DNA of 64,000 bases from Heteronotia binoei (Eukaryota). Where the stretch lies: assembly GCF_032191835.1 (NCBI RefSeq), contig NC_083223.1, positions 250,604,001-250,668,000 on the forward strand, given 5' to 3'. Both the position numbers and the translations under genes were made by a program. Of this stretch, positions 8,015 to 41,300 are shown in pieces (within the stretch, counting starts at the first letter, position 1; the number at the start of each line of letters is the position of its first letter). Under the pieces are notes generated by a model. That model had not been told where the DNA came from, did not search any database, and worked only from the letters and a program-made list of their open reading frames with translations.

Positions 8015-8437
8015 CAGGGGTGGCCAAAGTTGCTTAACATAAGAGCCACATAGAATAAATGTCAGATGTTTGAGAACCTCAAGACATGAATNNNNNNNNN
8101 NNNNNNNNNNNNNNNNNNNNNNNNNNNNNNNNNNNNNNNNNNNNNNNNNNNNNNNNNNNNNNNNNNNNNNNNNNNNNNNNNNNNNNNNNNNNNNNNNNNN
8201 NNNNNNNNNNNNNNNNNNNNNNNNNNNNNNNNNNNNNNNNNNNNNNNNNNNNNNNNNNNNNNNNNNNNNNNNTGGAAAGAAAGCGGCTCTAACTTTAAAT
8301 GTATTTTCCAAACCGCCAGCTGGCTTGGCTTGGAGAAGCAGTTTAAAGAGAGAAGTGCCCTCTCCAAGCTGGCCGATAGGGTGGTAGGGGCTTCAAGAGC
8401 CACATGTGGCTCCCAAGCTGCAGTTTGACCACCCCTG
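8015..8437. mobile_element. hAT-type MITE (contains an N-gap)
   Basis: TIRs caggggtggccaaa / tttgaccacccctg; perfect 8-bp TSD atacagaa (8007-8014, 8438-8445). Confidence 0.9.
8092..8272. other. Assembly gap (N run)
   Basis: 181 N. Confidence 1.
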
Positions 8438-18921: not shown

Positions 18922-19055
18922 NNNNNNNNNNNNNNNNNNNNNNNNNNNNNNNNNNNNNNNNNNNNNNNNNNNNNNNNNNNNNNNNNNNNNNNNNNNNNNN
19001 NNNNNNNNNNNNNNNNNNNNNNNNNNNNNNNNNNNNNNNNNNNNNNNNNNNNNNN
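18922..19055. other. Assembly gap (N run) in the GC-rich TMED10-like promoter
   Basis: 134 N. Confidence 1.
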
Positions 19056-19400
19056 TCCCGCCCCCCGCCCCGAATGATCCCCTCTCGCTACATCGCAGGG
19101 CTAAGCGATCTTGGGGGCGTGGCTTCCTCCCGGCTAGGCTCCGCCCCCTCCGGAGTGCGCTGGCTGGAGAGCGCCACGTCGGATGTGAACGAAGCAAGCA
19201 GGGAGGGCTGGGCGGCAGCCGAGCGAAAGGAACCCGAAGCTCCGCGCGTGGAAGCTGGGGCTGGCCTTGGGCGCGCAAGGAGGGCATCGTCCGCCCCTGC
19301 GCTGATTCGAGAGGATCGCCTTGGGAGGGGAGAGATTTGCACCGGGAAAGAAACGATCTCAGTGTAAACCGGTCCGGGTTCAATTCGGGGTCTGCTGCCC
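19056..19400 (+). promoter_or_regulatory. GC-rich CpG promoter / 5' UTR of TMED10-like
   Basis: High CpG density and GC boxes (ccgccccccgcccc near 19058, ggctccgcccc near 19137), next to an N-gap. Confidence 0.65.
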
Positions 19401-19407
19401 GCCAGCC

Positions 19408-19605
19408 ATGCGGGTCCTCCCCGGACTCTTGGGTCCCTTGGCGCTGATGCTGGCGCTGGAGGCCGGCAGCTGCCACGGGCTGTCTTTCCACTTGCCACCG
19501 CAGAGCCGCAAGTGCCTTAAAGAGGAGCTCCACCGGGACGTGATGGTCACCGGAGAATACGAAGTCTCGGAAGCTGCTGCTCCCGGGGTCAGGACAGATC
19601 TCCGG
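19408..19605 (+). CDS. TMED10-like: p24-delta / transmembrane emp24 domain protein 10-like, exon 1 (signal peptide and start of GOLD domain)
   Basis: gccagccATG; MRVLPGLLGPLALMLALEAGSCHGLSFHLPPQSRKCLKEELHRDVMVTGEYEVSEAAAPGVRTDLR (66 aa); donor CGG|GTGAGC, phase 0. Aligns to TMED10 [28 protein letters not shown]. Confidence 0.95.
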
Positions 19606-19765
19606 GTGAGCGGAGCAGGCCTTTTCCGCCCCCTACCCTGCGGTATCTTCAGCTCTTCTTCGCTGCTTTAAAGCCGCCCCCCACACACACCAATGTTGGC
19701 CTGTACCTCCAGTGTTTCCAGAGACAGGGAATTAGTTCATGCTGCTGTCCCTTCTCTTTCCACAG

Positions 19766-29600: not shown

Positions 29601-29664
29601 TGCAATTTCTAAGGTTCTTTTGACAGCTAAATTTGTTCTAACCTGATTTAAATGCTCATGGGCC

Positions 29665-29670
29665 TTTATT
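29665..29670 (-). terminator. Polyadenylation signal of GSDF-like gene
   Basis: Plus-strand tttatt = AATAAA on minus, about 220 nt after the stop codon. Confidence 0.65.
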
Positions 29671-29888
29671 CAAAGCGTTCTGCAGCAGGTGGGAACTCAA
29701 GCGCTCCATTTGGGGTTCTTTAGTGTGTGGGAGGGGGCTGTGGAAGAGGTTTTCCCACCGCTTCTCTCCAGTATCAGAAAATGCCAGTTCAGGGGCATCC
29801 CTTACAGGAGAAAATCTGTGATGGTTGCAGATGATGATCCCTGTCTATCCCCTGAATTCGGTTTCTTTTGTGCCAAGTGGAGCAGGCC

Positions 29889-30002
29889 TCAGGGTTGGCA
29901 GTGGCAGTCACGATCCAAGCGTGGTGCCCGTACAACTAATGTGCCATCTTCTTGGAGAAACACAAAGGAGATTGAAGTCCGGCGCGGTCGACAGCAGCGT
30001 GC
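29889..30002 (-). CDS. GSDF: GSDF-like TGF-beta family ligand, last coding exon (exon 5)
   Basis: Acceptor cttgcttttctccag|, phase 0: ARCCRPRRTSISFVFLQEDGTLVVRAPRLDRDCHCQP* carries the TGF-beta C-terminal CC-x-P...C-x-C motif. AATAAA follows at 29670-29665. Confidence 0.85.
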   Translation of the reverse strand, partial: ARCCRPRRTSISFVFLQEDGTLVVRAPRLDRDCHCQP

Positions 30003-31000
30003 CTGGAGAAAAGCAAGTGATTGTTTTTTTCAAGAAGAGCATAGAAGATTTACAATTTCTGCACTACACTCTCAAGCCAATACAATTATGTGCAGAGCTA
30101 CTTCAGATCATGTTTGCAGTACAGAAGCAAACTACGAGTATTTCAATAGAACAAAACACCTAAAACTTGGGATAGGCACCTGAGTCCACCCATGAAGCTT
30201 GGGGGCTTGCACACACCTCTGACTGGCAGCTGCATATGTCCAGGGGAGTGAAGATGACTGGTATAAAACATACTTAGCACCTTCTTCACCCAAAGGGTGA
30301 TTAACACATGGAATTAACTGCTGCAGGAGGTGGTGGCAACTAGAAGCATAGACGGCTTCAAGAGGGGAGTAGATAAACATGGAGCAGAGGTCCATCAGTG
30401 CCTATTAGCCACAGGTATAGATGAAACTCTCTGGGGCAGTGATGCTCTGTATTCTTGGTGCTTGGGGGGCATCTGTGGGAGGGCTTCTAGTAGTCCTGGC
30501 CAATATTCCCTCTAACTTGAGTTAGCATGAGCTAGCTCACAGATTTTTAGCCTCCAGCTCACATGTTTTTGTCTTAGCTCAGGAAGGATGACCCCACAGC
30601 ACACTAATTTATGCACACTAATTTATTGCAAGAAGAAACATCCACAGAGAAACAGGCACAGAGAGAACTGTATACCGCCTGGTTATGGCTAGCCATGCTC
30701 CCTAGCAGGCAACAGTTATTCCTATTGGCTCACTCCAGAATTCTTCATTTGCATCTCTTTGTTATAAGTTGTTACATGCCTAGCATCCTGATTGGCAGTT
30801 CTTGCAAGCTTCAGGATCCTGGTTTGCAAGGAGTGCCTGCCTCAAACTCAGGCCTACTAGCAGTGAACACAGCAAATACATAACAGCTCTAACCTAAGGA
30901 GCATGCCCCAGAAACTTTGGGCTCCTCCCATCCCCTCTAAAGTACCAGAGTCTTCCAATTAAATTGCCTGAGTGGGTCTTTGGAGGACCACATCCTGTAC

Positions 31001-31167
31001 CTGCTTTGAGTCCACTGTTGGCTGATGGTTTGGCTGTCCAAGGAGTCCACACTCTTGCATCCAAACGGGGGTCGTCTGCCCCTTTTCCTTTTTGTGGCAC
31101 TGGCAGCCCAAGCATTCCGTGAAGACGAAGGAACTGGGGTGCAGCACCCAGGTTTGCCAGCCGAGAT
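31001..31167 (-). CDS. GSDF: GSDF-like exon 4 (core of mature TGF-beta domain)
   Basis: Acceptor cccactcccttag|, 167 nt, (D)LGWQTWVLHPSSFVFTECLGCQCHKKEKGQTTPVWMQECGLLGQPNHQPTVDSKQ, donor CAG|GTACAG, phase 0. The DLGW-x-x-W-V-x-HP...C-x-x-C motif is GSDF-like. Confidence 0.9.
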
Positions 31168-31409
31168 CTAAGGGAGTGGGGAGCACAGAAAGGCATAAAG
31201 GGGTGGGTGGAAGACAGTTTTTGCAAACCATGTCTAAAAACTGTATTTGCTTCTCCTTTAAAATGGCTAGACTGGTAATTCCCATCTGAGAACAGCTAGA
31301 ATGCCACAAAAAGAAATAACTAATACGACATCTCTCTCTGGGAGAGGGTGGAACAGGGTTTGGGGAGGGGCCTCAGCATTGTGCAATGTCATAGAGTCAT
31401 ATGACATAT

Positions 31410-31605
31410 GAAGCTGCCTTATACTGAATCAGACCCTTGGTCCGTCAAAGTCAGTATTGTCTACTCAGACTGGCAGCGGCTCTCCAGGGTCTCAAGCTGA
31501 GGTTTTTCACACCTATTTGCCTGGACCCTTTTTTTGGAGATGCCAGGGATTGAACCTGGGACCTTCTGCTTACCAAGCAGATGCTCTACCACTGAGCCAC
31601 CGTCC
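31410..31605 (-). mobile_element. tRNA-Ala-derived SINE (Squam3-like), in GSDF-like intron 3
   Basis: Minus-strand head gtggctcagtggtagagcatctgcttggtaagcagaaggtcccaggttcaatccctggcatctcca. Related copies near 8880-9095, 18388-18530, 36820-37035 and 61420-61560. Confidence 0.75.
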
Positions 31606-32664
31606 CTCTCCAAAGGGTGTTTTGAAGTGCACCCTTCAAAACAGCCTCTGCTCCTGAGCCTTTAATAGAAGTTAGATCTGCAGGTCATAGCAAGCAAAAC
31701 ACAGAAATGTTTTTCCTCCACTAAAGAACAAAACCAGCACAAAATTTCTGCATAACACATAGTCAGCCCTCTGACGATGGCTCCAAAGGCAAATCTGAGT
31801 ACAGCAATAAGCCCTGGGAGACTCCTGGTAGGGGCAGGTTCCCCAGGACATGCATGCAAGGGTTTAATAGCGCAACCTTATTTTTATTTATTTATTTATA
31901 GTCCACCTTCCTCACCAAGACCCAAGGCAGATTACATAGAGTAAATCAATGCAATTAGTAGGATGAGGCATCTAATAAGTAATGCAATAGGACTAGGATT
32001 ATGAAAACCTGAAACAAAGCCAAATGTTGATGAGAGGGATGAAAGCCTCCAAGTGGAGCCTGGAATCCCCTGGAATTACAACTGTTCTTCAGATGACAGA
32101 GATCATCTGGAGAAAACGGTTGCTTTGGCAGGTAGATTATATGGCATTATATGGCATTATCCTTTTTCTCCTCAAACCCTACTCTCCCCAGGCTCCATTC
32201 CCAAATCTCTAGGACTTTTTCAACCCAGAATTGGCCACCCTCATTTGTGATATGTCAAACAATGCAGGAAATGGTATTACAGAAGTAGAAACCACTGCAG
32301 TAAGAGCAGGATAATATTACAACAAACAGATAATACATACCATATACAAGGGCATAGTCTACAGTCCTTTTCCCTTTATAAAAGCATCTTCCTGAACCAT
32401 TCTGTTATAATATTTTCCTTATTACCTTTATAGGAATTCCCACCTGAACGATTTTGTCTTTCATAGTTTGTGGTCATTCCAGGCAGTAAGCCAGTATAGT
32501 ATAAATGCCATCATACTTGATGTGTTCACTATAGGAGCCTCAAAGGAGACTTATAACCACAGCAGGCTGGTCTGTTTCTGCCCCTGCCTGGCAGCCTCAT
32601 AAGGCACCACGCCGGCTGGGGAGAAAAACAGAGATTTTAATCTAACCAGAATGAGAGCATTTAC

Positions 32665-32739
32665 CATCCATCATGATACGATATGAGATCTGGATGCAGC
32701 TCCCTCTTCGTATCAGCAGCGTTTGATTGGAGAAGATAT
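32665..32739 (-). CDS. GSDF: GSDF-like exon 3 (end of prodomain, dibasic site, first cysteine)
   Basis: Acceptor ttccttcctctctaaacag|, 75 nt, (D)IFSNQTLLIRRGSCIQISYRIMMD+D, donor G|GTAAAT. Phases 1/1 join exons 2 and 4 in frame and give the family spacing C-x10-DLGW. Confidence 0.85.
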
Positions 32740-34210
32740 CTGTTTAGAGAGGAAGGAACATTTGGTGATTAGGTCTACGTGGCAGAGACAAGGCCCCCCT
32801 GTTAACCAGGAGAGAGAATGTCAGCAGATACTGATTCTCCCTACAACGCAAAATTATAATGGGGAAAGTTGGGGCTGCCAGATTTGAGTCTTATTAAACA
32901 GGATCCTGAATGGCTTCTCCTAAAAGGTTCAACACAGATAGAGTGAAAGAGGGTAGAAACATTGTAACACATTGCTGATCACCTTTCTTTACTCTCTTCC
33001 CTAGCTGACAAAAGGCATTGGCTGTGCTGCTGTGATGTCATAGCAGGAGGTCTGTCATGGAATATTTAAAACCACAGTGAAGGAAATTGAAGGTCATGCG
33101 ACAAGGGGAAATACTTCAGACTCTGAGCATAGGAGGAAGAACAGAATGTAGGGGTTGAGGGGAAGAGATTAGCATTGGGACAGAACAGATTGCCAAATAC
33201 GGGTTTGAACATTCCTGGAGATTTGGAAGCAGAGCCTGCAGAGGACAGGGACCTCAGTGGGGTATAATGCCATAGACTCCTCCAACCTCCAAAACAGTAA
33301 TTTCTGCAGGGGAACTGATTTCTGTAATCTGGAGATCAGCTGTAACTCCAGGAGATTCCAGGCCTCACCTGAAGGTTGGCACCCATCAAGCAGAGACAGA
33401 TGGGAACAGGAAAATTAAGCAAGTAGGGGTGAGGGAGCCATATTGGTTTGATTTCAACATCCAAGCATGGCTATAGGTCTCAACAACAACTTGCAGTTCT
33501 GGGTTCCCCTTTACAGATGGGAGAGCTGAAGCTGAAAATTAACAATTTACCAAAGCCACATAGTAAATCCTTAGTTAGTGTTGCCAACAGGCCTAGAAGG
33601 GGGGAAAAAATGTCCCATTCCTTTTAACAGAATCTTAATGTGTTCTTATTTACCTCCATGCCATTAAAACTTTCAAGTGCCATTTCCACATGTAAAAGTT
33701 ATTTAAAAAGAAAAAATAAATTTTTTTCAAGGTCTGTTGGCAGCCCTATTCTTTGCAAGTTCAAAGACAACGAACTTCAAATTAGTGTTTGTTTGCCAGT
33801 CTGTTTAAGATGCTTACAAGAAATGTAGAAAGTGAAGTTTTTCCAGCGATCTCAGAAAAAGGCTATTGTTAAAGGGAGAAGAGAGAGGGTGGCAAGGGGA
33901 GACCAAACTTTATCTCAGCAGTACCTGGTGGGACAAACTGAAGAGAGGATCATGGTTAACTTCTAAAAAGAGAAGTGCTGGAACTTAAGCTTCACTAGAA
34001 TTTGATTCCAAAGCCACTACGCAGTGGTTCATGGTGAGGCAGAAGGCACTCTGCACAGGCCTAGAGATACTCTCATCACTTTGCACATTCTGCTGCTGGA
34101 CCTTGGAGCAGCAACCTGGTGGAAGGACTCAAATTAAAATCCTATTGTATAGCTATGGTGAGCAGCAGGTCTAGGGCAGAAACCAGATGTGGGAGGTCAG
34201 AGGAACTCAC

Positions 34211-34374
34211 CAAGGTACTGCCCCTGACTGGACAGGGTTGGGAGCTCCCTCGCCACCTTGGCCCAAGTTTCGTGTGCTTGGTCTGCTGCACTGGCTGCAA
34301 TCCTAGGAGGCCGGTCCAACCGAAGCTGCTGAAGCATTGCAGAAGCTGCCCGCCAGAGGACTTCTGCCCGGCAG
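34211..34374 (-). CDS. GSDF: GSDF-like exon 2 (prodomain helix)
   Basis: Acceptor ctttgttctctctcctttgacag|, 164 nt, (x)CRAEVLWRAASAMLQQLRLDRPPRIAASAADQAHETWAKVARELPTLSSQGQYL+D, donor TTG|GTGAGT. Resembles the fish Gsdf prodomain pattern C-x-x-E-x-L...LL-x-x-L-x-L...P...E-x-W as I recall it. Confidence 0.8.
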
Positions 34375-34797
34375 CTGTCAAAGGAGAGAGAACAAAGTAA
34401 AGTTAAGCTGTGGTGCTTAGAGCCAGGGTGTGTTCACACACACTAAATAACACGCTTTGCAACTGGGTTTTTACTGTGTAAGAACAGCAAAATCCACTTG
34501 CAAACAGTTGCCATGTGAAAGAACCCCCTGACTGTTCGGCAGCTCCCTGGTGTTGTTGTTATTGCAGTAGTGGTTCTGTTTGGGTTTAGAGGACAGCAGA
34601 GTAGCAAGAGACCAAAGAGGACAGCTGGACTCCTGTGCCTTTGAGAACTGGCTTGAAGGAGGCATTTCAGCCAGTGCCTTCTCTGTAGGAGAAGCTGCCG
34701 CTACTCAATTCCTCCTTCACCATATCTGTTTAAACCATATGAACCACAACCACCTTTTCTCTTAAGCTGCCAACTGGACTTCTGCTGTCTCCTGAAC

Positions 34798-34967
34798 CTT
34801 TCACAGTGGCTCAGTATGGAGAAGCCAGCAGGTGAAGCATTTAAGGTAAAAAGGTAAAAGGTAAGGTAAGGTAAAATTTTATTTATATCCCACCCTCCCC
34901 CGCCGAAGCAGGCTCAGGGCGGCTGTTGAAGGCTCAGGAGCAGCAGGAAGGCTGAGAAGTTGGCCAT
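34798..34967 (-). CDS. GSDF: Candidate GSDF-like exon 1 (signal peptide), interrupted by a LINE-tail insertion with in-frame TGA
   Basis: agaATGg (good Kozak) gives MANFSAFLLLLSL, then insert-derived QQPP*. After the insert the same frame continues LNASPAGFSILSHCE to a weak phase-2 donor AG|GTTCAG at 34798; exon 2 requires phase 2. The exon boundary is uncertain. Confidence 0.5.
34845..34928 (-). mobile_element. Short LINE (L2-type) 3' end fragment with (TTACC)n-like tail inside candidate GSDF exon 1
   Basis: The minus strand reads agccgccctgagcctgcttcggcgggggagggtgggatataaataaaa, homologous to the 3' end of the L2 at 22.3 kb and to copies near 3.39 and 15.8 kb. Flanked by a TSD-like 7-mer pair, tttaagg 34840-34846 and ttgaagg 34926-34932. 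Confidence 0.8.
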
Positions 34968-35169
34968 TCTAACATGCAGCGTTGTTCTGCTCTCAAGAAG
35001 TTTATCTGCCTCCTGTTCCCTGCCCACACAGACACTGTTGGCACATCTTCCGTAGATTAAGCATTTCCCTGCCCAAAACAACAGCAACAGCAAAAAAAAA
35101 AAAGTTCACACTTCAACATCATTGACAAGAGTATCTAGCAAAAACAACTTTTCTGCTCTCCACAGAGAA

Positions 35170-35364
35170 GGGGGTGGAAGGCAGCATAGTATAGCCTCAT
35201 CTCATCAGATCTTAGACGCTAAGTAGAGTCGGTGCTTGGATGGGAGACCACCAAGGAAGACTCTGCAGAGAGAGGCAATGGCAGACCACCTCTGCTTCTC
35301 CCTTGCCTTGAAAGCCTCTTGCTGGGGTTGTCATGAGTCAGCTGCAGCTTGACAGTATATACAC
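35170..35364 (+). mobile_element. 5S rRNA-derived SINE (SINE3) with RTE/BovB-type tail, about 200 bp upstream of the GSDF-like start codon
   Basis: atctcatcagatcttagacgctaag...cttggatgggagacc resembles the 5S internal promoter region, followed by gaggcaatggcagaccacc. Copies on minus near 20570-20735, 27960-28165 and 50205-50410. Confidence 0.75.
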
Positions 35365-38300
35365 GGGACAGGCCGCTTTCATAAAATGTGTTCCCCTTTT
35401 CTAGTCAAATATATGCAACCCTACCGAACAAGCCCACTCTTCTTTCTAGATATGACAGTCTAAAGTGACAGTTTTTATTTTACTGGACTGAACCCTAGGC
35501 TGGCTGGCACCTTGGCAAGGCTGACTTCTGATGTCCCTCCTCCACTAATAACATCACTGAGTCACATGGGGGACACCCAATTCAGTGTCCCCAGAAGGTC
35601 AGCACCCGAGGCAATTGCTTAGTTTGCCTAACGGCGGGGCTGGCCCTATGGGCCAGGCACCTTTAACAGATGCACAAGAGACAGCTATTGGACAGGTAAG
35701 ACATGTCAGAGGGACTCTGCCCTGATTGTTGCACTGTTGGCAATGGTCCCAAAGTAGCCCCAAAATATTCCCTCAGTATGAAAAATAGAAGAGTCTTGAC
35801 TTTACTCACCCCGCCCTGAAGCACACATTGTATGAACAGCGATGGAATCACAACCGTTCTGTCACTCTTAAAACACCACCACAGTTAAGGATTGTGGATG
35901 TGTTAAGGTGACATTCAGATAAATCAGCCAATCAGATACTGGTTTTAAATATGCAGAGAAAATCAAGGAGCTGGGAGGATCATCCATAGACCACCTGTCC
36001 TGCACAGAAAAACTTACATCACAGGCCACAAAGCAAAGCTGCGAAAACAAACTAACAAGAAGAAAGAGTTGCCAACTTTCTGGCTGGACCTGCTCCCAAA
36101 AGCAGGGCTTTTTTTTTTTGGTAGAAAAAGCCCAGCAGGAACTCATTTGCATATTAAGCCATATACCCTGAAATCATCATTGTTCACACAGAGCTTTTTT
36201 GTAGAAAAAGCCCAGCAGGGACTCATTTACATATTAGGCCACTCCCCCAACACTAAGCCAGCTGGAACTGTGTTACTGTGCATTCCTGCTAAAAGATCAG
36301 CCCTGTTTACAAGCATCTTCCTCAGAAGGCGATAATGCTTATTTCCAAGGCCTGGAAACAATTCACTTGCAGACCAACAGTTGGATGTAAAAAAGTGCAA
36401 AAAGCAAGTGAAATAATTTTTCCAGTTCTGCTGGTAATCTTACTGATAAAAGTGTTTACAAAATCAACACCTGCAAGGGAGTTCAACTGTAGGGAGAGGC
36501 CTGTGACTCGGTGATAGAAGCATAGAATTGCAGAATTGGAAGGGCATCCAGGCCATCAAGTCCAACCCCCTGCTCACTGCAGGATCAGCCTGAAGCATCC
36601 CTGAGCAGTGTTTCTGCAGCTGCGACTTAGATTGCCAGTGAGGTGGAGCTCACCACCTCCCTAGGTAGCTGGTTCTGCTGTTGAATAATTCTTACTGTAA
36701 AAAAGTTTTCTCTAATATCCAGCTGGTACCTTCCTGCCCTTAATTGAAACCCATTATTGTGAGTCCTCTTCTGCCAACAGGAACAGCTCCCTTAAGTGAC
36801 AGCCCTTCAAATACTCCAAGAGAGCAATCATGTCCCACCCCACACCTCCTCTTCTCCAGACTGAACATAGAGCATCTGCTTAGTGTCAGCAGGTCTCAAG
36901 GTTGAATCTTTGGCATCTCCAGTTAGAAAGATGATGAAAGATTCTCGGAAGTTGCTGCTGCCCCCACCAGTCACAGTAGACAATTCTGACCTTGATAGAC
37001 CAAGAGGTCTGACTAGTATCAGGCAATTTCATGTGTTCAGTTGTTAGAAGTAAACAAATGCTCCCCGCAGTGTTGTTATGGAGCACAGGTCCATCAGTGG
37101 CTATTAGCCACAGTGTGTGTGTATATATAAAATTTTTTGCCCCTGTGTGACACAGAGTGTTGGACTGGATGGGCCGTTGGCCTGATCCAACATGGCTTCT
37201 CTTATGTTCTTATGTTAGACAGATGCCTTGCAAACTGAATTATAGCAGATACACCCCAGACAGTAGAAAAACTCTTCCTAAAAGTCAAGTACGAAGGAAC
37301 TCTTCATCTGAATGTAGCTCTACACCACCCACAGAATCATAGAATTGGAAGGTGCTTACAAGGTCATCTAGTCCAACCTCCTGTACAATGCAGGAACTTC
37401 ACAAATACCTCCCCCCACCACATCCCCAGTGAACCCTGCTCCATGCCCAGAAGGTGGCAAAAACCTCCAGCATCCCTTGCCAAACTGGGGTGGAGAAAAA
37501 TTGCTGACTGACCCCAAAGTGGCAATCAGCATTTCCCTGGGTGTGTAAGAAAGGGCCACAAGAACTAAGTACTGATGCAACCCTTCCTGCCCTCCCTCTC
37601 ATGATCTGCCTAAGTTCACAGAATCAGCATTGCTGTCAGATGGCCACCTAGCCTCTGCTTAAAAATCTCCATCCTGCATCTTCTTATTACAGTTATTCCC
37701 AGCCCTTTGGAGGATGGTGAAGCAACGTGGCTCTCAGGTGGGGAAATAAGGCCCTTCCTGACTCTGTGAGTTCTGACCTACCCCCTGAGATGCCAGAAAA
37801 GGTAAGTAAATGAATATCTATTGTAATTTGACAGTTTATTGGGAAACCATCCATGTCATGTTTAGTTTAAAATCTCCTATGCCACGTAGGACAGTTAAAT
37901 CCAAGTGCAGTAGCACCTAAGAGATCAACAAGACTTTTAGGGCAAAAGTTTCTGAGAGTTAAAGCTCCCTTCATCAGAAAGGAATAGGAATGGAAATCTG
38001 AGTCTTTATATCCCAGTCAGAAGGTGGGAGAGGTGTTGTAAAGATGCAAAGGTACAAATGCATATTGTAGTCAGCTTGATTAGGGGAAACGCAGAAGGGA
38101 GCCTTGACTCTCAGAAACTTATGCCATGAAACTCTCATCCATTTCTAGGGTGCTTTGGGACCTGAATCTCACTGTGCTACTGCAGACCAACATGGCTATC
38201 CTCTGAAATGAAGCCACTAAGAAAGCATGGAGATCGGTGTGGAGGGAGCACCTTCAGGACACCAAGGAGGTATGGTAAGTAAGAAAGAAAAAATGCCTAT

Positions 38301-41300
38301 CACCTTTCATGAACAAATATCTCCATTTCTATTTCAAACCCAAAGGGTGACGATGCTGGAAAAATTATCCCATTTTCCTGGATCAAGTGGAAACCTATCA
38401 TAGCTGTAGGTTGACCCCACAAATATGCATAACTCTCCGCCACAACCACATATAAGTTACCGGTCAGCATCACCTCTTCTGGCTTGAGATTCCACAAGTA
38501 AATCTTGCAGAGTGTGATAAAGAACTTCCCTTTATTTGTTCCCAATCAACTGTTCGTCAACTGCATATGGTGATCCCATGCTACAGATCGATGGTTGTGG
38601 AACAGTGCTCTCTATCCCTCTTCTTCCTTCCACCCCATGCGTAAGTGTGTAAACCTTTCATGTCTTCTTTAGTAGGTTTTGTTTTTTAGAAAAAGACCCA
38701 AACGTCTAACTTTTCCTACTAGGGAAGCTGCTTTAACATCTTTGCTTGTTGGGCTGCCCTTTTTCTGCCTGTTCTCCAGTTCTACAATATCCTTTTTGAG
38801 AGGGAGGGAATTTCAAAAGAAGCATCTTTTCTCTTCCATTGCAGAAATCTCTCCTTCTAAGCCACTATTAAAGGCAGATGCCTTTATAGAAAGATCCTTT
38901 CCCACATCTGGCCACCCCAGTCCTCAAACCACAACTGCCCAGGAGGTATCCATGCAGCTGCTTACCTGTCATTGAGGGTAACCACTGCAGATTCCTGTGG
39001 CTGACCATCATCGGAGTTTATCTCCCAAGGGGCACAGGCACCCCAGGGTGGCACCCCTGCCAGCAACCCACTCAGTAGCAGCATGTGCCACATGGCCAAG
39101 TTGAATGTATCTGGGCAAAGGCGAAGGGGAGTGGGTTTTGCGGCCAGGTGGGCAGGATGGCGAGTGAAGCTGAGGGGGGGGGGGGACTGGGAAGAGATGT
39201 GAGCGGACAGACTGTGGGAACCCACTTTTATCTGCCTCTCCTCCAGCACTCTGGTGACCTTGGCATTCTTCACAGGCAGGCTTGTGTCTTCCTCGACAGG
39301 AACTGGGAAAGGAGTATCAGATGCCAGCTTTCTGCCCTTTGGGGTATGGCCAGACACTCCCCCCCCAATCAAATCCACCCCTTTTAAAAATCATAAAAGC
39401 AAGGGGGCCCCCTTTAGGCACCATAGCTGGTACCCATTGATGAACCAATCTTTTGTGAATCTGTCTAATCTTCTTTTAAAACCATCTATTCTCATCGCTA
39501 CGTCTACTGGTTTAATTCAGACTTGAGCCAAGAGTCTGTATCAGAAGAAACTGCTTTATGCTTTGTAACAAGTGGAATAAAGACGAGGGCCTCTGAGTAT
39601 GAGCAGAGCACAGTGCATTTTTAATAATCAGCCACTGAGTAACCACATCCTATCCCAGGAATGGGGAGTAGAACTTCCAATTCAGAGGTGGATGTAGGGA
39701 GCAACACAAGGAGGAGAAATTTGCCATGGATTGTGCTTGCTGAATTCTGTGCCCCTTGAAAACTCATAGAGATACAGTGCCAATCAGGGTCAGATTAACA
39801 ATTAGGCCAAGTGGGCACGGGCCTATGGGCTCCCATGCCTTTAGGGGCCCCAGACCAGCTCCCCCCCACCCCGTTTCCCCCCCTGCTTGCAGCCCTCCCA
39901 GCTTGCAAGTGCAGTCAGCAACTCAACTGCTCTTTGCCTGACTTGCCCGCCTGGTGCGGCTGCCGCTTATATCATCACCAAGTTTGCCTCTGTCTGCCTC
40001 TTCCCCAGAACTTTGTCGAAGGGGCTTTTGAGAAGGGGCTTGCAGGCTGCAGTGTGGGCTGTGGGTGGCAGGGCAGGTGTTCTGACTCTGAAATAATTTA
40101 CAAGGGGGTTTCTGAGATTTTAACTGCCTAGCAGCCTCCACAGGGTTTAATCTGGCACTGGTGCCAATAGAAGTTGTCGTCACTAGATTGTCATATTTGT
40201 AGGGCATCTCTACCATTTCCACATGTTAAGTCTCCATTATAGGACAGGACATTTTCTCTAGGCTGCTGGCAAGCCTAGCCCTGACCTGAGGAATGGAAGC
40301 TGCCACACAGAATGTTTAAGGTTAAAAAAGCACCTTTAACTCTCTCCTAAAATTAGACAAACAAAATGTAAGATTTTGCAAACAGAGGCTTAAAATGGGC
40401 ACTGTGGCATACGCCTGTCTATAGCCTAGCAGCAGAATGTTGGTCCATCTGCTGCTTCCAGAATGCATTACAGTCATCTCAATAAAACCAGAGTGTAGCT
40501 GTTTGCAGCCAAATTGTTTCTCTTCATGATTGGGCACAGCAGGTAGACAAGATGCCCCATCATGAAGCCAATGTGCACTGGCCCTGTACATTTTTTTAAA
40601 AAAAGGATTAGAAACATTTGTAAATGATAGACCTAGGGTTGCCAGGTCTGTGTTGGAAAATATCTGGAAGAAGAAGAAGAAGAAGATATTGGATTTATAT
40701 CCCGCTCTCCACTCCAAAGAGTCTCAGAGCAGCTCACAATCTCCTTTACCTTCCTCCCCCACAACAGACACCCTGTGAGGTGGGTGGGGCTGGAGAGGGC
40801 TCTCACAGCAGCTGCCCTTTCAAGGACAACCTCTGCCAGAGCTATGGCTGACCCAAGGCCATGCTAGCAGGTGTAAGTGGAGGAGCGGGGAATCAAACTC
40901 AGTTCTCCCAGATAAGAGACCGCACACTTACTACACCAAACTGGCTCTCCACCAAACTCGCTCTACACCAAACTGGCTCTCTCTATCTGGAGACTTTGGA
41001 GGGGAGCCAGGAGAGGGCGGAGTTTGGGGGAGGGGAGGAGCCTCAGCAGGGTACGATGTCACAGAGTCCACCCTTCAAAGCAGCCATTTCCCCCAGAGGA
41101 GCTGATCTCTGCCAGCTGGAGATCAATTTTAAAAGCAGGAGGTCTGCAGGCCCCACCTGGAGGCTGGCAACCCTAGGTCCTCTCCATAGCAACCAGCCAT
41201 GATAGCCAAATAGAGCCTCCAGAATTAAGAGGCAGCCTACTCCTGAGTACCAGATGCTGTAGACCAGGGCTCCCCAACTTTTTGAGCCTGCAAGCACTTT

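Follow-up and report, generated by a model that had tools for sequence, protein, structure and literature searches.

A candidate squamate orthologue of gonadal soma-derived factor in the gecko Heteronotia binoei

Does a member of the Gsdf (gonadal soma-derived factor) lineage survive in reptiles? The question is raised by a gene on the minus strand of a 64,000-nucleotide stretch of the gecko Heteronotia binoei (NCBI RefSeq assembly GCF_032191835.1, contig NC_083223.1, positions 250,604,001 to 250,668,000; hereafter the window), in which a preliminary description had recognized a four-exon TGF-beta gene and proposed a reptile GSDF. Gsdf has been reported from teleosts, gar, coelacanth, lungfish, shark, newt, and caecilian. 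The literature up to March 2026 describes a two-loss scenario, with one loss of gsdf in Anura and another in the amniote ancestor, and a survey of TGF-beta ligands in 24 species, including a lizard, a python, and a gecko, called gsdf ray-finned-fish-specific. On the sequence evidence, we consider it probable that squamates have in this gene their orthologue of Gsdf or, failing that, the only member of the Gsdf lineage left in amniotes. The proposal of a reptile GSDF is supported by an intron plan shared with a fish-like fragment, designated L050, by a 50-bit profile score against that fragment, and by a 44-column tree.

Gene structure, conservation, and transcription

Five coding exons on the minus strand splice into a 215-amino-acid (aa) open reading frame (ORF) (Table 1). 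The four peptides claimed earlier are indeed encoded there, at 34373-34212, 32737-32666, 31165-31001, and 29999-29892, and splicing bore out the canonical AG/GT sites, the phases 2/1/1/0, and the trailing AATAAA. The count of exons did not stand, since coding exon 1 (39093-38966) had been missed. All four downstream exons have an AG acceptor, and all internal exons have a GT donor. Exon 1 was the sole strong candidate in a scan of the upstream sequence; it has a hydrophobic, signal-peptide-like start, ends at the donor CAG/GTAAGC, and agrees both with the N terminus of the Paroedura orthologue and with the H. binoei database model from residue 150 onward. Exon 2 begins one nucleotide ahead of the codon for an invariant cysteine, Cys44, and the leading "x" of the peptide first described is a split codon. 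Exon 3 ends within the Asp codon of the DLGW motif (phase 1), and exon 4, which corresponds to positions 14 to 54 of the Pfam TGF_beta model, ends in a phase 0 donor after Gln.

The gene encodes a 215-aa precursor of a divergent TGF-beta-superfamily ligand. It comprises a signal peptide, a short prodomain (about 80 residues), and a cystine-knot domain that includes a CC pair as well as two additional cysteines, and it carries N-glycosylation sequons at two places (N-D-S and an invariant N-Q-T); such a CC pair supplies the inter-chain disulphide in other ligands. The cystine-knot framework that had been claimed passes the Pfam threshold in the full protein, which scores 35.2 bits against TGF_beta (PF00019; cutoff, 27), while exon 4 alone gives an E value of 0.002; orthologues score 33.1, 35.7, and 42.1 bits. 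The prodomain was modelled as two helices with a predicted local distance difference test score (pLDDT) of about 90. A single invariant Arg precedes the first knot Cys, and the absence of an R-x-x-R motif makes furin cleavage unlikely.

The ORF is identical to residues 150 to 364 of the H. binoei NCBI model LOC132579523, and the window evidently belongs to chromosome 1 (C1) of this gecko. The 149-residue N-terminal extension of that model overlaps the promoter region and is probably a prediction artifact; the Met used here is the start of the Paroedura, Rhineura, Podarcis, Elgaria, and snake models. Extensions of 50 to 150 residues are also a feature of a set of NCBI models (P0010 [H. binoei], P0003 [Hemicordylus], P0018, and P0019), where they cross a conserved promoter block and its SF-1 and GATA sites are "translated" as PVKNAKVT. 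These extended starts are probably wrong, because interspecies insertions and deletions in this stretch are not multiples of three.

Orthologues were found in the geckos Paroedura and Eublepharis, in Rhineura, Podarcis, Elgaria, Hemicordylus, Lerista, and Pogona, in two Anolis species, and in four snakes. An exhaustive phmmer search with exon 4, together with word-indexed searches using the protein and profiles, returned relatives in squamates only, and the squamate profile matched the gecko genome at this locus only, as expected of a single-copy gene. When the gene was rebuilt from genomic DNA in six squamates, every species had the five-exon plan (128 [125 to 131], 164 [158], 75, 164 to 167, and 111 nt), with phases 2/1/1/0 and junctions at identical residues. 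Because the same five exons and phases occur in five other squamates, the exons in the window are not a product of chance. Precursor length among squamates is 213 to 215 aa. The ratio of nonsynonymous to synonymous substitution rates (dN/dS) lies between 0.25 and 0.41 in all 15 pairwise comparisons, in the prodomain and the mature domain alike, the pattern of a fast-evolving protein under purifying selection. Ten cysteines, the N-Q-T sequon, and the tryptophans of the DLGW region are invariant or nearly so.

Transcription was assessed with X1, a public run marked "DNA?" and the only transcript-like run in which the gene occurs, which was aligned on window positions 29650 to 35600. In one 545-nt contig, positions 31168-31000 are directly continuous with 30001-29650, so that exon 4 is joined by splicing to exon 5 with the 3' untranslated region (UTR). 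The aligned portion of a second contig stops at 34211, exactly at the exon 2 donor. Read depth was present over exon 3 and absent over unique intron sequence, and coverage reached down to 29650, the edge of the compared stretch. That the gene is real is near-certain. With its spliced, exon-only contigs over this gene, run X1 is in effect a transcriptome despite its label.

Table 1. Features of the Gsdf-like gene in the H. binoei window
Feature	Position	Strand	Description
Conserved proximal promoter block	39210..39328	-	117-235 nt upstream of ATG
CCAAGGTCA, consensus SF-1/NR5A1 site	39255..39263	-	At -170
AGATAA, GATA site (possibly also TATA-like element)	39228..39233	-	At -140
Coding exon 1	38966..39093	-	128 nt; ATG, signal peptide, N-D-S sequon; phase 2 intron next
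Coding exon 2	34211..34374	-	164 nt; prodomain helices; phase 1 intron next
Coding exon 3	32665..32739	-	75 nt; N-Q-T sequon (invariant), Arg109, Cys112 (first of the knot)
Coding exon 4	31001..31167	-	167 nt; DLGW, knot motif C-L-G-C-x-C, additional Cys162 in the loop
Coding exon 5	29889..30002	-	111 nt plus TGA; CC and C-x-C of knot
3' UTR	29650..29888	-	AATAAA at 29670-29665

Comparison with a fish-like fragment and with the gecko paralogues

The fragment L050 (MDSQ01219163.1; 1216 bp, GC content 41%) was found by a degenerate DNA scan of metagenome contigs with the pattern L-G-W-[DQ]-x-W-V-[IL]-[HY]-P, the other six of its seven metagenome matches being due to chance. The same probe, applied to a collection of prokaryote genomes, gave bacterial chance matches only, and these were discarded. 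We take L050 to be a putative teleost gsdf, its translation appearing nearly word-for-word that of percomorph Gsdf and comparable to the medaka and trout proteins. It holds three exons, corresponding to exons 2 to 4, separated by introns of 94 and 98 nt, and is without exons 1 and 5. Its knot motif, C-A-L-C, lacks glycine, matching a published Gsdf trait.

Differing intron positions had been named as grounds for rejecting a Gsdf identity, and no such difference was found: all four comparable boundaries and their phases match between the squamate gene and L050, the putative gsdf. The first acceptor of the fragment lies one nucleotide before the prodomain Cys codon, implying a phase 2 intron like that of squamates. 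Exon 2 is 158 nt long, the length of exon 2 in Podarcis, and is followed by a phase 1 junction. The next phase 1 junction splits the Asp of DLGW as G/AT, as in squamates, and a phase 0 donor follows Gln ahead of the CC exon, the exon 5 acceptor lying beyond the end of the contig.

The likeness extends to the protein. A profile of the squamate sequences scored spliced L050 at 50.0 bits, in a colinear alignment reaching from the Cys of the prodomain as far as the knot motif, and none of 500 shuffled sequences exceeded 7.2 bits. Two parts of the profile each placed L050 at the top: the prodomain section gave it 22.8 bits, with 7.2 for the runner-up, and the section for the N-terminal half of the knot gave it 33.0 bits, with 24.4 for GDF15. 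The program hhalign aligned the prodomain exon with exon 2 of L050 over 41 gapless columns (probability, 87%; E value, 3.8e-6), and BLASTP aligned the two exon 4 peptides with 45% identity over 22 aa (E value, 2e-8). Both L050 and the squamate proteins have a W-V-x-H-P-x-S segment where other ligands have W-I-x-A-P-x-G-Y, and they share the C-x-x-C spacing as well as an extra Cys in the following loop. Over about 105 aligned columns the squamate proteins are 25 to 33% identical to L050. Published identities are 28 to 29% between coelacanth and teleost Gsdf and 31 to 33% between gar and sea bass, so the divergence from L050 falls in the range seen between accepted Gsdf orthologues.

In the tree of 44 columns, L050 grouped with ten squamate proteins against 19 gecko paralogues with support of 100/100. 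Approximately unbiased (AU) tests rejected placement of L050 with GDF15 (P = 0.012), AMH (P = 0.010), and GDF9/BMP15 (P = 0.012) and marginally rejected its placement with the inhibin betas (P = 0.042). A grouping with some other TGF-beta clade, the second ground named for rejecting the identity, was thus not what emerged: the profile gave L050 50 bits and the paralogues at most 32, and the tree split was 100/100.

The other TGF-beta genes of the genome were located with the Pfam model and then read. GDF15 (C2:192.57 Mb), AMH (C2:199.56 Mb), GDF9, BMP15, LEFTY, the inhibin betas, MSTN/GDF11, and the BMP/GDF genes all occupy separate loci. Each of them has its mature domain within one exon, except the BMP5-8-type genes, in which one intron follows DLGWQ and another lies 12 residues ahead of CC; none of the other TGF-beta genes found in the genome has the squamate exon plan. 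An idea that TGFB1-3 share both mature-domain introns was rejected, since by their Pfam coordinates the putative TGFB-type genes are split elsewhere, and the four genes fetched for this comparison are of the BMP5-8 type. Inhibin alpha and AMH are ligands of gonadal somatic cells and, in mammals, have SF-1- and GATA-driven promoters. They are usually nearest to Gsdf in published trees and differ from it in their far longer precursors, single-exon mature domain, and canonical C-x-G-x-C. INHA is a separate gene in Anolis; a back-translated motif did not locate it in the gecko genome.

This reading of the paralogues turned up further copies in the genome. Two identical GDF1/GDF3 (Vg1)-like mature domains lie 1.7 Mb apart in opposite orientation, at C2:185922081-185922386 (L007) and C2:187620427-187620732 (L008), and a third, stop-interrupted copy at C2:187605320-187605499 (L027) adjoins one of the pair; together they look like a recent segmental duplication. 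A weak, degenerate inhibin-beta-like frame (L039; Pfam E value, 0.001) occupies C13:25708891-25709166, 42 kb from the INHBC/E-like gene at C13:25.75 Mb, and could be a tandem duplicate in decay.

Gsdf traits, genomic neighborhood, and alternative identities

The squamate gene resembles gsdf in several respects besides its agreement with L050 in intron boundaries and phases. It has five coding exons and four introns, and fish gsdf likewise has five exons (PMC9275722). Its precursor is about 215 aa long, has a signal peptide and a very short prodomain, and compares with about 190 to 230 aa for Gsdf; Cynops GSDF has 214 aa, the Latimeria coding sequence has 693 nt, and lengths in the literature are about 214 to 230 aa. 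Both show C-x-x-C spacing in place of C-x-G-x-C, one additional Cys in the loop that follows the knot motif, a sequon for N-glycosylation immediately ahead of the knot's first Cys, a proximal promoter with SF-1 and GATA motifs, and fast evolution. With the whole protein as query, the nearest feature cluster in ESM-Atlas was "gonadal somatic cell derived factor" (0.93; 196 of 256 features), with artemin and GDNF close behind. The AlphaFold model (pLDDT, 71.6) contains the finger strands. Its best nonsquamate Foldseek matches, which rank after the cluster of the snake orthologue itself, were unnamed fish proteins of 172 to 310 aa, aligned over their full length with E values of 3e-11 to 6e-8. 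Two differences concern the gene itself: relative to L050, squamates have an exon 4 about 36 to 39 nt longer and an exon 3 shorter by 18 nt, and most squamates carry a Gly inside C-x-x-C with a further Cys two residues on (C-L-G-C-x-C). A third difference is in the neighbors, which are CTSW, a TMED10-like gene, and FIBP in squamates, compared with nup54, aff1, and klhl8.

In fish, gar included, gsdf shares a block with nup54 and aff1, and the human counterpart of this block is on chromosome 4. The gecko equivalents are on C9 (NUP54 at 110.19 Mb, an AFF gene at 101.5 Mb, and BMP3 at 106.2 Mb). The Gsdf-like gene is at C1:250.63 Mb, 65 to 75 kb from FIBP (C1:250.56 Mb), in a setting like that of human 11q13.1. 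A Pfam search for SDAD1 found no match anywhere in the genome and was uninformative. In the same genome GDF9 stands beside an AFF gene on C5, and BMP15 is on the same chromosome (C11) as another AFF gene. These linkages fit the published paralogy of gsdf, gdf9, and bmp15 and suggest a derived state for one of the two Gsdf positions; gsdf is placed at a rearrangement breakpoint in a review. Apart from the multi-exon NUP54 on C9, a single-exon copy at C21:89717827-89718231, with the whole Pfam domain and one in-frame TAA, is probably a processed pseudogene.

Around the gene itself, the neighbors are kept among squamates, with a divergent papain-family (CTSW-like) gene upstream and a convergent EMP24/TMED gene downstream; in the snake Candoia, a bZIP gene occupies the downstream position within 10 kb. 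The downstream neighbor in the window is a TMED10-like (EMP24/GOLD) gene at 19321-19671 on the plus strand, convergent and situated between the Gsdf-like gene and FIBP; TMED10-like genes were also noted at the orthologous loci L031, L040, L041, and L043. Human CTSW and FIBP are adjacent, with no TMED10-like gene known between them. FOSL1, which had been suggested as a flanking gene, was not found in the window by a six-frame scan for the Fos basic-region bZIP motif. Interspersed repeats at 31404-31600 (intron 3), 30290-30615, 32040-32240, 33230-33430, and 35220-35420 have very high summed depth in all gecko runs. The first of them looks like a tRNA-derived short interspersed element, and many contigs end or jump there. 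Runs of N occupy positions 8092-8272 and 18922-19055.

Several observations weigh against the identification as Gsdf. L050 is an unlabelled metagenome contig, and its provisional name comes from its likeness to medaka and trout Gsdf and from its glycine-less knot, not from a database. It is the only putative Gsdf sequence from outside squamates in the comparison. The likeness of the prodomains is seen at the level of profiles only, since a pairwise BLASTP search of the gecko prodomain exon against exon 2 of L050 gave no alignment. The tree rests on 44 columns, has L050 on a long branch, and leaves out INHA. Synteny with nup54, aff1, klhl8, and sdad1 was not found, the gene being on C1 and the markers of the block on C9. 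The published diagnostic of Gsdf is a knot motif that lacks the glycine of C-x-G-x-C, and 13 of the 15 squamate sequences have a knot Gly (C-L-G-C-x-C), contrary to it; the exceptions are Pogona, which lacks the Gly, and Hemicordylus, which lacks the middle Cys. Finally, an ESM-Atlas search with the mature domain alone placed the artemin cluster first.

Of the other explanations, the one that survives best, while still unlikely, holds that the gene is an ancient paralogue of the Gsdf lineage that was kept only in squamates, the orthologue at the aff1/nup54 locus having been lost. It would account for an 11q13-like neighborhood on C1 as opposed to the 4q21-like block on C9, for the deviations in the knot motif, and for the high divergence from L050. 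That divergence is nonetheless the same as among accepted Gsdf orthologues, and gsdf is described in a review as sitting at a rearrangement breakpoint. In addition, the genome has one such gene, and among the human paralogy groups 11q13 and 4q21 are not known to be sister regions of the 2R (two-round) genome duplication.

It is less probable still, and in our judgment improbable, that the gene is an orphan squamate TGF-beta ligand whose likeness to Gsdf is convergent or reflects deep ancestry within the superfamily, L050 not being gsdf at all. The provisional name of L050 leaves room for this, as do the preference of the mature-domain feature search for artemin, the best scores of only 0.78 to 0.81 obtained with the prodomain alone in ESM-Atlas, and the exhaustive phmmer search with exon 4, which did not find fish Gsdf at an E value below 0.001. 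Against these points, convergence is very unlikely to have produced four intron boundaries common in place and phase and, with them, a colinear match of 50 bits that takes in the prodomain; in teleosts, moreover, the TGF-beta gene described as having five exons is gsdf.

A diverged duplicate of GDF15 is very improbable. GDF15 resembles the squamate protein in having a TGF-beta cystine knot and a similar DLGW-x-WVL segment, it was the best match among solved structures to the squamate profile (32.8 bits), and the automatic NCBI product name of the snake, Pogona, and Eublepharis copies points to it. But BMP7 scored nearly the same (30.4 bits). Among the gecko paralogues, for which the best score against the profile was 32 bits, GDF15 reached only 23, and in a Swiss-Prot fold search, where every reviewed ligand had an E value of 6e-5 or worse, it ranked 16th. 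GDF15 proper lies at its own C2 locus, where one open frame of 274 aa encodes an undivided mature domain with the normal motif (C-E-G-S-C). It differs from the squamate gene in having two exons, the canonical C-x-G-x-C, and a prodomain that is about 190 aa long and has a furin site. Descent from it would need three intron gains, and the AU test set L050 apart from it as well (P = 0.012). GDF15 orthology was rejected, since the squamate gene is interrupted by four introns, two of which fall within the mature domain, and GDF15 proper lies elsewhere; the name "GDF15-like" on the squamate records is unsupported and misleading. A decaying pseudogene or gene-prediction artifact is hardly tenable, since the fairly fast evolution (dN/dS up to 0.41) and the odd N-terminal extensions on several NCBI models are set against an intact ORF and kept splice sites in six species spanning Squamata, dN/dS well under 1 in both domains, invariant or nearly invariant knot cysteines, a spliced transcript contig, and a conserved promoter.

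A conserved promoter block and the possible role of the squamate gene

Gsdf is typically made by the somatic cells of the gonad, in most cases with a male bias. The promoter of the squamate gene offers an indication of where it may be expressed. The block listed in Table 1 is the only well-aligned upstream stretch among six squamates, the snake included. Its SF-1 site is at the same aligned position in all six species, with the variant CCAAGGCCA in Rhineura. Thirty nucleotides downstream of CCAAGGTCA, the AGATAA motif sits within GGCAGATAAAAGT, which is invariant in all six. Promoters of AMH and INHA have the same module of SF-1 plus GATA. Fish gsdf promoters contain Sf1, Dmrt1, GATA, and SOX motifs, and their activity needs the Sf1 and Dmrt1 sites (PMC8292791). 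Read in this way, the conserved SF-1 plus GATA block suggests expression in gonadal somatic cells.

A sequence of events can be proposed on this basis. Either the squamate gene or fish gsdf would have moved, leaving the squamate copy in its present CTSW/FIBP (human 11q13.1-like) neighborhood. The gene would be transcribed in gonadal somatic cells positive for SF-1/NR5A1 and GATA factors, by way of the CCAAGGTCA plus AGATAA module. Its secreted product would be uncleaved and glycosylated, probably a disulphide-linked dimer that retains its short prodomain, and by analogy with fish Gsdf the ligand may act locally on neighboring germ or somatic cells. The full proposal is that Gsdf was kept past the amniote ancestor and that its squamate orthologue, relocated and expressed in SF-1/GATA-positive gonadal soma, acts in differentiation of the testis or ovary; we advance it tentatively, judging its chances to be slightly short of even.

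The squamate sequences themselves are not new, being already in NCBI without a meaningful name; the link to Gsdf is. The novelty asserted for it holds, as the records are called only "uncharacterized" or "growth/differentiation factor 15-like," the loss of gsdf in amniotes is asserted in papers up to March 2026, and a search of the literature on gsdf and squamates returned reviews only.

A conserved, transcribed member of the lineage in squamates would alter the history of gsdf loss. If the identification is true, the single loss in amniotes would be replaced by several later losses, in mammals, in turtles plus archosaurs, and possibly in tuatara, alongside that in frogs. Because Gsdf drives testis differentiation in fish and has become the master sex determiner more than once, the gene would be a candidate in squamate sex determination, and it may equally be one in signaling between gonadal soma and germline. 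Squamates, with their frequent turnovers among temperature-dependent, XY, and ZW systems, would thereby gain a sex-determination candidate that has repeatedly served as a master switch in fishes, and Anolis, Paroedura, Pogona, and Eublepharis would offer the first experimentally tractable amniote Gsdf.

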